Origin: Macrostomum lignano
Lineage: Eukaryota
Length of the DNA: 64,000 bases
NCBI GenBank assembly: GCA_002269645.1
Contig: NIVC01000082.1
Coordinates: 62,001-126,000, forward strand
Direction: 5' to 3'
Every line of letters starts with the position of its first letter. Position 1 is the stretch's first letter. Made by a program: the position numbers and the translations under genes. Positions 2,800-9,310 of this stretch are shown here, in pieces. The notes beneath the pieces are model-generated. The model saw only the letters and a list, made by a program, of their open reading frames with translations, did not search any database and had not been told where the DNA came from.

Positions 2800-5700
2800 A
2801 TGGCTGCGAACAGTCAGGACAGCAGCAATTTGGAAGATGGCATCGACTGGAACCGCTTAGAGGAACTGCTGTCTGGCGGGCAGGCGTCAGGAAACTCTGT
2901 GCATCGACTGTTGCACGCGGCAGTGAGGCGAAACGATGCCCAGGTAGGAGATAACCTTGTCTTGCTCTTGCTTGATGTACGGGCTTTGATGAGATCTTCA
3001 GTTTTCATTTGACGAGGCGCCATCTCATTTTGGGGGCGCCATCTCATTTTGGGGCGCCATCTCATTTTGGGGGCGCCATCTCATTTTGGGAGCGCCATCT
3101 CATTTGGGGACGCCATCTCATTTTGGGAGCGCCATCTCATTTGGGGGCGCCATTTCATTGGGCGCCATTTCATTGGGGGCGCTATTTCATTGGGGCGCCA
3201 TTTCATTGGGGGCGCCATTTCATTGGGGGCGCCATTTCATTGGGGGCGCTATTTCATTGGGGTGCCATTTCTTGGGGGCGCCATCTCTTGGGGCGCTATT
3301 TCTTGGGGGCGCCATCTCTTGGGGCGCCATTTCATGGGGGCGCCATTTCTTGGGGCGCCATTTCTTGGGGCGCCATTTCTTGGGGCGCCATTTCTTGGGG
3401 GTGCCATTTCATTGAGGGGAGGGGCACCATTGAATGCAGGCTAAGCTTCTCAATCTAGAGCCCACCAGCTCCTATCCTGCTCACCCCACAAGGCGTTGCA
3501 ACTGCTTTTAAACCACGGCGCCGATGCGAACGCCCAAGCCGACTCTGACGGTCAAACGCCGTTGCACCTGTGCGTTGAGCACAGCTGCTCAGACTGTCTC
3601 AAACTGCTACTGACCGCCGGGCGCGCCGATCCGAACGCCGTCAATCAGGCCGACGAGACGCCGCTGCACTCGGCCGCCGCTGCCACCGGCTCGTCGTCGT
3701 CGACCATCTCGACTGTTCGCGAGCTTCTAGCTGGCGGAGCCGACTGCAATCGAGTCGACTGTTTCGGCGACAACCCGCTGCACCGAGCCTGCCAGGCGGA
3801 GAACAACCCCGCGGTCGCACTCCTTTTGAAGGCCCGTCCGCAGCTCGTCAACTTGCCGACTGGCGGAGATCAGAAGCTCACCTGCCTGCACATTGCGGCC
3901 AGCGCTGAGAACTCGGAGCTGTTCACCCTGCTGCTGTGCCACGGCGCCGACTTCTTGGCCGAGGACGCTCGCGGACGCAGCGCGATTGACCTGCTGCTGG
4001 ACAAGCAGGATACAACTAGAATTGACTGCTTAGGCCGGCACCTGTTTGAAGAGGTGCGGTATTTAACTTTTAGTCAGTTAGTAAGTCTTTTAGTTACTCA
4101 GTCAGTCAGTTAGTTAGTTAGTTAGTTAGTTAGTTAGTTAGTCAGTTAGTTAGTTAGTTAGTTAGTTAGTTAGTTAGTTAGTTAGTTAGTTAGTTAGTCA
4201 GTTAGTTAGTTAGTTAGTTAGTTAGTTAGTTAGTTAGTTAGTTAGTTAGTTAGTTAGTTAGTTAGTTAGTTAGTTAGTTAGTTAGTTAGTTAGTTAGTTA
4301 GTTAGTTAGTTAGTTAGTTAGTTAGTTAGTTAGTTAGTTAGTTAGTTAGTTAGTTAGTTAGTTAGTTAGTTAGTTAGTTAGTTAGTTAGTTAGTTAGTTA
4401 GTTAGTTAGTTAGTTAGTTAGTTAGTTAGTTAGTTAGTTAGTTAGTTAGTTAGTTAGTTAGTTAGTTAGTTAGTTAGTTAGTTAGTCAGTTAGTTAGTTA
4501 GTTAGTTAGTTAGTTAGTTAGTTAGTTAGTTAGTTAGTTAGTTAGTTAGTTAGTTAGTTAGTTAGTTAGTTAGTTAGTTAGTTAGTTAGTTAGTTAGTTA
4601 GTTAGTTAGTTAGTTAGTTAGTTAGTTAGTTAGTTAGTTAGTTAGTTAGTTAGTTAGTTAGTTAGTTAGTTAGTTAGTTAGTTAGTTAGTTAGTTAGTTA
4701 GTTAGTTAGTTAGTTAGTTAGTTAGTTAGTTAGTTAGTTAGTTAGTTAGTTAGTTAAGTCTTGATTGTACTCAAACAGCAACATCGCACACCTCAGGTGC
4801 GCCGCTTCCGGCATGGTGAGTCAATTTACGACCTGCTGGACTCGCCCGAAGGTGGCCGCTACCTGGAGCAGCTGCTGCGCATCGATGGCGTCTGCAGTCC
4901 CAAGCAGGCGTCGACAAAGTCCGCCGAAGAGCTCGCCCAGGCGCAGTCGTTCTCTCTCGCTGAACTTCGCCGACTGGTCGCCTACCGAAAGCTGGACGCC
5001 GAGAGACTGGTGTCGGCGCTTGAAGCCGCCTTCGAGGCTGGCCTGGCTGACGTCTTGGACTCGACGCCCGCCCACGGGGAGCTGACTCAACGACTTGTTG
5101 AGAAGACGGTTCAGCTGGTTCTGCTGCCTCAGGAGACCGAGCTGCTGGGCCGGCTGCTCTCCTGCCGTCGCCTGTGGCGCTGTCTGGCCTGGCGCATGCA
5201 GGCCGGCGTCAGGCAGCTGTACGACACCGCGCTACGCGGCAGCAAAGCCGGCATCCGACAGATTCTGAGAACTGAGTGCAGCCGAGACGATGTTGCAACT
5301 GTCGGCGGCAAAAGTGCAATCGATCTGAACAAGCTGAACGCATTTCTGGCTTCGACCACCACTTATTGGCAGTTTCGTCGGCGCGAGCTTCGACTCGTTG
5401 AGGATTCGCGCGCCGCCATGAGGGACCCGCTGCAGTCGTTGGCGCTCTGGGCGACGCTCACCGGCCGCATGCGGCTGGTGCCGAGCCTGCTCAGCCAGGA
5501 GGAGTTCGACCTGGTGCCGCTGTCGCTGCTTATCGCGACGCTGCTTCGTTCGTTGGCCACTCGACGGGACGTCGAGGACGTGTTCGCCGACAGAGCCGAC
5601 AAGGTGGCCGACCAGTGCGAGGGCATGGCCATTCAGGTGATCAAGGAGGTCAAGGAGGTGGACAACTCCTACGGCAATAATCTCACAATCGCCTACGTCA

Positions 5701-8700: not shown

Positions 8701-9310
8701 CGTGCTCATGGTGGTTTACATTGTTGTTGTGCAGGTTCTGCTACTCAACGTGATTGTTGCCATGTTTAGCAAGACCATCGACATGGTGGACTCAGAGTCG
8801 AAGGCCATGTGGCTGTTCGAGCGCTACGATCTCAACAAAGAGTTCATAAAGCGTTCAGCTCTGCCGCCACCTTTTAATATTGTTCTGGAGGCGCGAAATC
8901 TCATCTGCTGGTGCCTGTCAAAAATCATGCGACTGTCGCGCCGCCGCTGCTCTCAGGCGCCTGAAGCGGATCAGCGGCAGCAGCAGCCGCTGGACATAAT
9001 AAAGCAGCACCTGAACATCAACGATTCCGAGGTTAAGCGTCAAAATTTCCACAATTTTGTCTACCTATTTTACCTGTTTTATCAAGCTGTGATGCTGCGC
9101 CGGCTGCGACGCAAGCTGGACGGCTTTCAGGCAGACGAGAGCGAACTCAGCAGCGAAGGCGTCCTGCTGCTGCATCGGGTTGGCGAACTGCGCCAAGTTC
9201 AGTCGGATCTGCGCGACTATCTTGAGTCGCAGCACTCGGAGTTGAGCTCAGTCAGCCAGAAGCTGGACAGGCTGCTGGCGATGGGCGGAGGAGATGCTGG
9301 CAGCGGTTGA
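2800..9310 (+). CDS. TRPM-like: Ankyrin-repeat-containing TRPM-like cation channel, 5 exons, 1176 aa
   Basis: Exons 2800-2943, 3493-4053, 4797-6054, 6255-6998, 8487-9310; all GT-AG and phase-consistent, total 3531 nt. Ankyrin repeats (GQTPLHLC, ETPLHSA, DNPLHRAC, LTCLHIAA). MHR4-like segment (LALWATLTGR...TVLDLAARGGASSF...SWYG). Six TM helices, pore TFYTIVGEYGLDEL, S6/TRP domain LLNVIVAMFS...WLFERYDLNKEF...LPPPFNI, C-terminal coiled coil. An alternative in-phase exon-3 acceptor exists at 4778. Confidence 0.9.
3014..3415. repeat. 16-17-bp GGGGCGCCATTTCATT minisatellite in TRPM intron 1
   Basis: Direct reading; lies within intron 2944-3492. Confidence 0.95.
4068..4756. repeat. (TTAG)n microsatellite filling TRPM intron 2
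   Basis: About 170 near-perfect TTAG units within intron 4054-4796. Confidence 0.98.
7212..7841 (+). mobile_element. Internally deleted Tc1/mariner (IS630-Tc1) DNA transposon
   Basis: ORF 7331-7729 N-terminus (RISAKDRQRLIQAY...GRLLGISRRTVTYIV...GRIEPLPRGG) resembles a Tc1-type paired-like HTH; no DDE domain. Left IR 7225-7285 is reverse-complementary to 7664-7708 and 7794-7830. The ends lie near TA dinucleotides. Confidence 0.8.
7924..8195. mobile_element. hAT-type MITE, 272 bp, 78-bp perfect TIRs, 8-bp TSD
   Basis: TIRs 7924-8001 and 8118-8195 (CAAGG...CCTTG). TSD GCTGGTGC at 7916-7923 and 8196-8203. Confidence 0.9.

Follow-up and report, generated by a model that had tools for sequence, protein, structure and literature searches.

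The closest described relatives of the gene analyzed here are channels of parasitic flatworms. TRPM_MCLZ of Schistosoma mansoni (Smp_333650) is a protein of 1380 amino acids (aa) encoded by three exons; expressed in HEK293 cells, it gives rise to Ca2+ signals and inward currents evoked by the anthelmintic meclonazepam (MCLZ), and it is a ligand-gated cation channel with its agonist in the cavity that S1-S4 form with the TRP helix (PMC10788528). The channel does not possess an NH2-terminal melastatin homology region 1/2 (MHR1/2) or SLOG domain and presents ankyrin repeats there instead (PMC11731825). Rohr et al. (2026) referred to it as a "TRPM-like" group, placed beside the other TRPMs by clustering, and a duplicated channel exon was reported in the TRPM-like genes of Opisthorchis, Clonorchis, and Paragonimus (PMC12861061). 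Two large TRPM/TRPS phylogenies, in which Platyhelminthes were unsampled, state or assume that ankyrins are absent (PMC7306681, PMC13143021), and we found no mention of free-living flatworms in the papers on TRPM_MCLZ that we consulted. Here, we analyzed a 64,000-nucleotide (nt) stretch of the genome of Macrostomum lignano, a free-living flatworm (contig NIVC01000082.1, positions 62,001 to 126,000; hereafter the window, numbered from its first letter). It contains a five-exon gene at 2800-9310 on the forward strand, which is very likely a M. lignano member of the flatworm "TRPM-like" family whose founding member is TRPM_MCLZ. The ankyrin-headed TRPM architecture itself is already known from TRPM_MCLZ.

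The gene presents a coding sequence of 3531 nt and a product of 1176 aa (hereafter the window protein). Its span had been proposed from a reading of the letters alone (hereafter the sequence-only reading) and proved exact, both ends falling on the ATG and on the stop codon. Splice sites were tested by script over a reading of 2400-9800 and every intron was found to be GT-AG. The 1176-aa product is identical over its full length to GenBank BOX15_Mlig030258g2 (P0001). The gene is intact and its model is backed by transcript evidence.

The protein starts with an ankyrin domain that spans aa 31-223 (2890-4017). Pfam yielded five ankyrin-repeat matches at aa 25-222, with E-values of 1e-20 to 1e-32 for Ank, Ank_2, and Ank_4 (4e-32 for Ank_2). 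Among PDB sequences, the N-terminus matched DARPin and ankyrin-1 entries at E 1e-38 to 1e-45, and the match to NOMPC was confined to the ankyrin repeats (aa 37-187). The five TPLH-type repeats are followed by a degenerate sixth, made of helices 212-219 and 222-237 in the AlphaFold2 (AF2) model; the sequence-only reading had counted four to five repeats of this type, of which five are canonical, and had overlooked the sixth. No SLOG/LSDAT, NUDIX, or kinase domain was matched by Pfam in the 1176-aa protein, and a separate phmmer probe with a TRPM SLOG query was negative as well, in agreement with the absence of SLOG, NUDT9H, and kinase domains that had been read from the letters. Canonical TRPMs, as defined by MHR1-4, are characterized by a SLOG/MHR1-2 head, whereas the window protein has none: this head alone is replaced, by five canonical ankyrin repeats and a degenerate sixth. 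The departure from the textbook definition of TRPM that had been pointed out is genuine, since both TRPM and TRPS are ankyrin-free according to Himmel (2020) (PMC7306681).

The channel core is of the TRPM (melastatin) type and is not TRPC-like. Pfam placed Ion_trans at aa 704-1006. When aa 445-1056 were compared with PDB sequences using phmmer, TRPM4/5/3/2/7 were matched at E ~1e-29, and a query with the transmembrane (TM) region returned TRPMs for all 60 matches listed, the best being Nematostella nvTRPM2 (6co7, E 2e-23). A full-length AF2 model was generated from an 11-sequence family alignment (pLDDT 70.4, pTM 0.65). In a Foldseek comparison of this model with the PDB, TRPMs made up 49 of the 50 top matches, NOMPC at rank 8 being the sole exception, and TRPM2/3/4/5 chains were aligned over 880-1200 columns. 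The motif WLFERYDL..LPPPFNI is found at aa 1011-1034 (WLFERYDL at 8810-8833), and WLFERYDL...LPPPFN was aligned to WKFQRYDL...FAPPL of nvTRPM2. Both the TRP box (W-K/L-F-Q/E-R-Y) and the proline-rich TRP box 2 of canonical TRPMs are present in the window protein. The TRP box of TRPC is EWKFAR, which differs from the one found here, and the Pfam TRPC domain TRP_2 had no match in the window protein.

Ankyrin repeats joined to a TRPM-type MHR4/TM/TRP core, as proposed by the sequence-only reading, are thereby confirmed by Pfam, by phmmer against the PDB, and by Foldseek. The same reading had considered some local motifs to be TRPC-like, which did not hold: EEVRE aligns with EEIRQ of nvTRPM2 and SWYGD with VWWGQ of TRPM2, so that a TRPC-like interpretation of SWYGDFYDF and EEVREM is ruled out. 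A TM region nested within TRPC, TRPN, or TRPA finds no support among the PDB matches listed, all of which are TRPMs. A lineage between TRPC and TRPM was not borne out either, TRPMs accounting for every listed sequence match of the TM region (60/60) and of the MHR3/4 region (60/60), for 49 of the top 50 fold matches of the full-length model, and for all top 50 of the MHR3/4 sub-model. Like the window protein, TRPN/NOMPC, TRPA, TRPC, and TRPV present an N-terminal ankyrin domain before a six-TM TRP channel, but the likeness is limited to the ankyrin repeats, and the TM domain of the window protein is TRPM-type.

We then examined the region between the ankyrin repeats and the channel. The C-terminal half of the TRPM2-like domain PF25508 was matched at aa 438-561 with 26.7 bits, just below the cut-off of 27, and a paralog reached 32.7 bits. 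The family profile of aa 222-600 matched 63 PDB sequences, among them MHR4 of TRPM2/7/8 (E 1e-10 to 1e-11), and all 60 of the matches listed were TRPMs; this profile aligns collinearly into nvTRPM2 461-721 and TRPM5 271-623, including the MHR3 region. When the linker alone was compared by hhalign with the TRPM region preceding MHR4, the alignment was collinear, though weak (E 0.034, probability 1.5%), and for this reason we turned to structure prediction. An AF2 sub-model of aa 222-600 was obtained with pLDDT 80 and pTM 0.74, and the top 50 Foldseek matches of this sub-model were all TRPM structures. The alignments covered 288-422 columns for a query of 379 residues, which is well above the 160-residue MHR4 part. 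Because the Foldseek matches reach beyond MHR4 and the family profile is collinear, the linker at aa 236-440 is, on its predicted fold, an MHR3-like module, and only MHR1/2 has been exchanged for ankyrins. The sequence-only reading was right to call this segment helical and did not recognize its MHR3-like nature. Of the canonical TRPM regions, MHR3 and MHR4 are retained in the window protein.

Downstream of the TRP helix, the AF2 monomer model presents two long C-terminal helices, aa 1080-1114 and 1125-1168 (9017-9283). These are predicted to correspond to the rib helix and the coiled-coil pole helix; the Pfam domain TRPM_tetra was not matched in this region, the long helices being seen in the monomer model. 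The pore loop carries an extracellular insert between the filter and S6 (aa ~915-960, 8528-8680), which is of low complexity, rich in Ala/Ser/Thr and in acidic residues, predicted to be disordered (pLDDT <50), and much shorter in the closest paralog.

The best matches of sequence and fold for MHR3/4, S1-S6, and the TRP helix were found among TRPM2-like channels (nvTRPM2 6co7, the choanoflagellate TRPM2 chanzyme, and vertebrate TRPM2/4/5/8). The residues of their Ca2+ site in the voltage-sensor-like domain are kept in the window protein, as is the YGE/VGE-type Glu of the filter region. The window protein differs from these channels in its ankyrin head. Since both the SLOG/MHR1-2 head and NUDT9H are absent, the window protein has no ADP-ribose sites. 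The window protein does not fit the definition of TRPS (soromelastatin) either, which possesses SLOG and Nudix domains and is ankyrin-free (PMC7306681).

To collect relatives, 1.84 billion representatives were searched exhaustively using HMMER with aa 234-1176 as query, which yielded 1110 matches. Their architectures were tabulated with phmmer probes for ankyrin, SLOG, NUDT9H, and core, and five proteins were checked with Pfam. A word-prefiltered search with the 943-aa core returned three M. lignano proteins and two family-profile searches with the same word prefilter returned two proteins each, this prefilter missing relatives at 25-40% identity. The best matches of the exhaustive search, down to E ~1e-30, form a graded series of proteins that all present ankyrins and the same core, without SLOG or NUDT9H. 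Next below them are ordinary SLOG-bearing TRPMs, the best of which are flatworm NUDT9H-type TRPMs. M. lignano alone presents ~11 diverged ankyrin-type clusters at the 50% level (P0001, P0003, P0004, P0005, P0006, P0007, P0008, P0009, P0012, P0028, and P0125). Parasite members were found in Opisthorchis viverrini/felineus (P0010), Dicrocoelium dendriticum (P0016), and Schistocephalus solidus (P0017, which includes a transcript-derived UniRef entry). All named ankyrin-type members are flatworms, and several further members were found in Logan/MetaClust records. The search of other genomes that the sequence-only reading had recommended has thus recovered the same architecture in trematodes and cestodes.

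Several of these proteins can be tied to the published channel. The Dicrocoelium protein P0016 presents all ten of the published Sm.TRPM_MCLZ landmark residues with the published spacing (PMC10788528). Its S4 position is Tyr, as published for Plagiorchiida, and P0017 has Phe there, as published for cestodes. The Opisthorchis viverrini protein of P0010 (T265_12782, 1906 aa) contains two consecutive channel modules, their S4 motifs being IRTLN and MRTLH. This gene model evidently reads through both alternative exons, 3a and 3b, that Rohr et al. (2026) described (PMC12861061). We accepted P0016 as a TRPM_MCLZ ortholog on its ten landmark residues and P0010 on the published exon duplication.

TRPM_MCLZ and its parasite orthologs share with the window protein ankyrins in the place of MHR1/2/SLOG, the absence of NUDT9H, a TRPM-type channel, and the TRP helix. 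In line with the family definition, the window protein has neither a kinase nor a NUDT9H domain. The landmarks S2 Glu, S4 Arg, pore Tyr, and TRP-helix Arg of TRPM_MCLZ are conserved in it as well. Overall identity to the parasite orthologs is 21-22%, and the window protein has the low-complexity insert in the pore loop in addition. Each parasite possesses one such gene, whereas the ~11 diverged clusters of M. lignano form their own subclade. The lineage is therefore not an unrecognised one, as the sequence-only reading had entertained: it has been described as the TRPM_MCLZ/"TRPM-like" clade (PMC10788528, PMC11731825, PMC12861061), and a family already described is what that reading had itself named as speaking against it.

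We built a neighbor-joining (NJ) tree from 88-90 core regions over 481 well-occupied columns with 100 bootstraps; rooted runs were made with two distance corrections. TRPM_MCLZ is represented in this tree by its parasite orthologs in place of the Smp_333650 sequence itself. The ankyrin-type clade was separated from every SLOG-bearing TRPM with 100% bootstrap support. The window protein falls in a clade, also with 100% bootstrap support, with the TRPM_MCLZ orthologs of Dicrocoelium and Schistocephalus; the Opisthorchis ortholog is added to them on its sequence score. Two monophyletic subclades, one of M. lignano members and one of parasite members, were recovered with 100% bootstrap support each. 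Because these two subclades are reciprocally monophyletic, the window gene is one of many co-orthologs and not a 1:1 ortholog of Smp_333650.

By analogy with the characterized channel, the window protein would form a tetrameric, non-selective, Ca2+-permeable cation channel, which may be gated through the S1-S4/TRP-helix cavity as in Sm.TRPM_MCLZ. Its ankyrin head would offer a surface for protein-protein interaction and not a nucleotide-binding fold, and the ADP-ribose/nucleotide control might have been replaced by a bound partner or by the cytoskeleton acting through this head. Mapping on the nvTRPM2 alignment yielded a candidate Ca2+ site made of E742, E745 (in place of Q), N764, and D767, encoded in exon 4, and E1021. 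As the window protein retains all five positions of the Ca2+ site of TRPM2/4/5/8, intracellular Ca2+ is probably a co-factor or co-activator. The drug pocket is less well conserved, with 4 of the 10 landmark residues identical to those of Sm.TRPM_MCLZ; the changes are H827S, H831Y, Y864I, H946F, Y1117F, and T1121S. Neither His residue of S1 is kept, and S4 carries Phe at the landmark position, as do the meclonazepam-insensitive channels of cestodes (PMC12861061). With only these four matches in the pocket, the window protein is not expected to be sensitive to meclonazepam.

It could be argued that the ankyrin-channel fusion results from the gene model, i.e., that an ankyrin gene and a 5'-truncated TRPM gene lying side by side were misjoined over the (TTAG)n intron. 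The junction of exons 2 and 3 does span a 743-nt microsatellite intron. However, ankyrin repeat 1 itself extends over intron 1, and in the paralog P0003 (Mlig004154g2, 54% identical, locus L001) residues 1-892 are encoded in one open reading frame (ORF; 6001-8676 of that locus) that spans the ankyrins, the linker, and MHR4 up to S5. The join is therefore independent of any splice. The sequence of the exon 2/3 junction is also conserved between the paralogs (IDCLGRHLFEEVRRF vs IDCLGRQIIRDLRHF), and the same architecture is found in the transcript-derived Schistocephalus protein and in the Sm.TRPM_MCLZ cDNA, which has been cloned (PMC10788528). The gene models deposited in GenBank for this assembly were made from genome-guided RNA-seq transcript assemblies (PMC5730564). 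An artefact is effectively refuted and has very little left to recommend it: the fusion is real and is not a splicing artefact. Even less credible is the idea that exon shuffling recently gave rise to a chimera confined to this locus or species. The introns are full of transposon remnants and satellites, which indicates a structurally dynamic locus, but the full architecture is common to members at 21-40% identity in the ~11 M. lignano clusters, in trematodes, and in cestodes, and their clade has 100% support. This family-wide conservation refutes a private chimera, which the domain shuffling suggested by the sequence-only reading could have implied.

The origin of the family is a more delicate matter. 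Ankyrins also occur in flatworm TRPMs that have kept SLOG: P0018 (M. lignano Mlig003066) and P0097 (Clonorchis) present Ank_2, LSDAT_euk, TRPM2-like, and Ion_trans domains with NUDT9H at the C-terminus, and an ankyrin N-terminus was likewise found in P0186 (Opisthorchis), P0185 (Schistosoma mekongi), and P0181 (M. lignano Mlig025325g2). These channels resemble the window protein in their canonical ankyrin start and are the best-scoring SLOG-bearing TRPMs, but they retain SLOG and NUDT9H and their ankyrin region is shorter, with ~3 repeats. They represent a possible intermediate toward the SLOG-less family, since the loss of SLOG and NUDT9H from an Ank-SLOG gene would lead to the present architecture in two steps. 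We infer, with somewhat more confidence than doubt, that a TRPM2-like gene gave rise to the family, either inside Platyhelminthes or at their base, perhaps via such an Ank-SLOG-TRPM-NUDT9H form. This derived origin is favored because the family has so far been seen only in flatworms; it would have been followed by the expansion to ~11 diverged clusters in M. lignano. Alternatively, the family might be an ancient separate TRP lineage, sister to all TRPMs (perhaps with TRPS) or placed between TRPC/TRPN and TRPM, that kept ancestral ankyrins, never possessed a SLOG head, and survived only in flatworms. We consider this unlikely. It would agree with the proposal that ankyrins were lost before the TRPM-TRPS split (Himmel 2020; PMC7306681), with the Rigifila-rooted NJ runs in which the family is sister to (nearly) all other TRPMs, choanoflagellate included, and with the lack of a synapomorphy shared with any TRPM subclade. 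Every named member in the search of 1.84 billion representatives is nonetheless a platyhelminth, so that an ancient origin requires loss everywhere else. The window protein has kept MHR3 and MHR4, for which no occurrence other than downstream of SLOG in TRPM/TRPS is known, and the best-scoring SLOG-bearing matches are flatworm NUDT9H-type TRPMs. Long-branch attraction is moreover expected to pull fast-evolving flatworm sequences rootward in a distance tree. It is similarly improbable that the ankyrin-headed channels are a relic of a pre-SLOG TRPM/TRPS ancestor whose ancestral ankyrin head was kept together with MHR3/4; if this were true, MHR3/4 would predate the fusion of SLOG, and the origin of the melastatin family would have to be redrawn.

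A number of observations weigh against a flatworm-derived branch of the TRPM_MCLZ family. When rooted on the Rigifila TRPM-like protein, the ankyrin-type clade had the flatworm NUDT9H clade as its sister in 27-38% of bootstraps and (nearly) all other TRPMs in 53-60%; the NJ tree is distance-based and contains neither TRPS nor TRPC, which keeps it from discriminating between a derived and an ancient origin. The comparison for residues or indels that the family has in common with just one TRPM clade was essentially empty, with one column (flatworm NUDT9H) and three gap columns (non-metazoans). Between the two flatworm architectures, the ankyrin domains resemble each other no more closely than generic ankyrins do, and BLASTP of aa 1-440 against the Ank-SLOG TRPMs yielded generic ankyrin matches only, with none for the linker. 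The restriction to flatworms is a statement about named members, with the Logan/MetaClust records outside it. The gene structures differ as well: TRPM_MCLZ has three exons with the channel in the last one, whereas the window gene has five and its channel domain is split. As to function, the Ca2+ site was mapped using nvTRPM2 residues that we take to form its site, the aligned positions holding E, Q, N, D, and E. Cation channel activity has been demonstrated for Sm.TRPM_MCLZ only (PMC10788528). Membership of the window gene in the TRPM_MCLZ family nevertheless remains very likely in our judgment, and its derivation within flatworms the better of the two accounts of its origin.

The coding sequence is distributed over the five exons as follows. 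Exon 1 (2800-2943, aa 1-48) runs from the ATG through the N-terminal tail and the first helix of ankyrin repeat 1 to a GT donor, and this repeat continues across intron 1 (LLHAAVRRNDAQ|ALQLLLNHGADAN). Intron 1 (2944-3492) consists mainly of a minisatellite with a unit of 15-37 nt (GGCGCCATTTCATTGGG-type) at 3016-3418. Exon 2 (3493-4053, aa 49-235) encodes the remainder of repeat 1 up to repeat 5 and the degenerate sixth. Intron 2 (4054-4796, 743 nt) is nearly entirely a (TTAG)167 microsatellite (4090-4756, 98% matches). The first part of exon 3 (4797-5411, aa 236-440) encodes the all-helical, MHR3-like linker identified by the sub-model, Foldseek, and the family profile; its second part (5412-6054, aa 441-654) encodes MHR4, matched by PF25508, the pre-S1 region with SWYGDFYDF, and a loop that is acidic and disordered. 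Exon 4 (6255-6998, aa 655-902) encodes the pre-S1 helix, the S1-S4 voltage-sensor-like domain, S5, and the pore helix within the Ion_trans match. Intron 4 (6999-8486, phase 1) separates the pore helix from the filter. Exon 5 (8487-9310, aa 903-1176 and the stop) encodes the filter region (GEY), the pore-loop insert, S6, the TRP helix, LPPPFN, and the C-terminal helices. An additional intron at 9032-9086 appeared plausible by eye and was ruled out by the frame break that it causes and by the uninterrupted ORF at 8507-9310. All features of this gene are on the forward strand, and tblastn detected no second copy of it in the 64-kb window.

Some further features were observed in and around the gene. 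In the region upstream of the start codon (2715-2800), a TATA-like sequence (tataaatat) lies ~75 nt before the ATG, and an out-of-frame ATG at 2759 opens a short upstream ORF that overlaps the start codon. Intron 4 contains two transposon remnants. The first is a DNA transposon with an internal deletion and 40-nt terminal inverted repeats (7222-7261 and 7794-7833, 98%), between which an ORF at 7331-7729 encodes the HTH_28/HTH_23 N-terminus of a transposase. The second, a perfect inverted repeat of 80 nt (7922-8001 and 8118-8197), resembles a miniature inverted-repeat transposable element or a hairpin. The exon structure of the P0003 gene differs both from that of the window gene and from the three exons of TRPM_MCLZ. 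Its last exon is frame-shifted relative to the window protein (L001 ~9118), and the annotated C-terminus is garbled after ...MVDS; the UniRef fragment P0011 presents an intact C-terminus for this paralog type. The likely cause is an error in the assembly or a broken allele.

Elsewhere in the window, an ORF on the reverse strand at 34501-36678 matched Polycystin_dom, PKD_channel, and Ion_trans (E 1e-36, 1e-25, and 7.5e-10), and another at 43306-45888, also on the reverse strand, presents two PKD domains. Taken together, these two ORFs suggest that a gene of the polycystin-1-like type (TRPP superfamily) lies ~25 kb downstream from the TRPM-like gene. A third reverse-strand ORF (23307-24599) matched SARA_C (Smad-anchor/endofin-like, E 2e-8), and the surrounding 22-26 kb are strongly skewed in composition. 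A very strong strand skew was observed at 10000-14000 (GC skew of ~-0.45 to -0.49). A 15-nt tandem array (CCTCTCCCCCATCTC x33) extends over 10540-11049 and overlaps an ORF at 10415-11206. The tRNA scan of a tRNA-like stretch at ~9600-9680 was negative.

What our analysis adds to the known architecture is modest: a branch of the TRPM_MCLZ family that is free-living and expanded, in a flatworm amenable to genetic work, and, with the same modesty, the retention of MHR3 and the Ank+SLOG forms as possible intermediates. The rule that TRPMs have no ankyrin repeats is broken twice in Platyhelminthes, by heads made of ankyrins only and by heads that combine ankyrins with SLOG. TRPM_MCLZ is, to our knowledge, one of only two deorphanised anthelmintic TRP targets. 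The parasites that carry it are hard to manipulate, and M. lignano is free-living, transparent, and capable of transgenesis. Its expanded set of ankyrin-headed channels may thus constitute a tractable system for the binding partners of the ankyrin head and for the gating of the channel.

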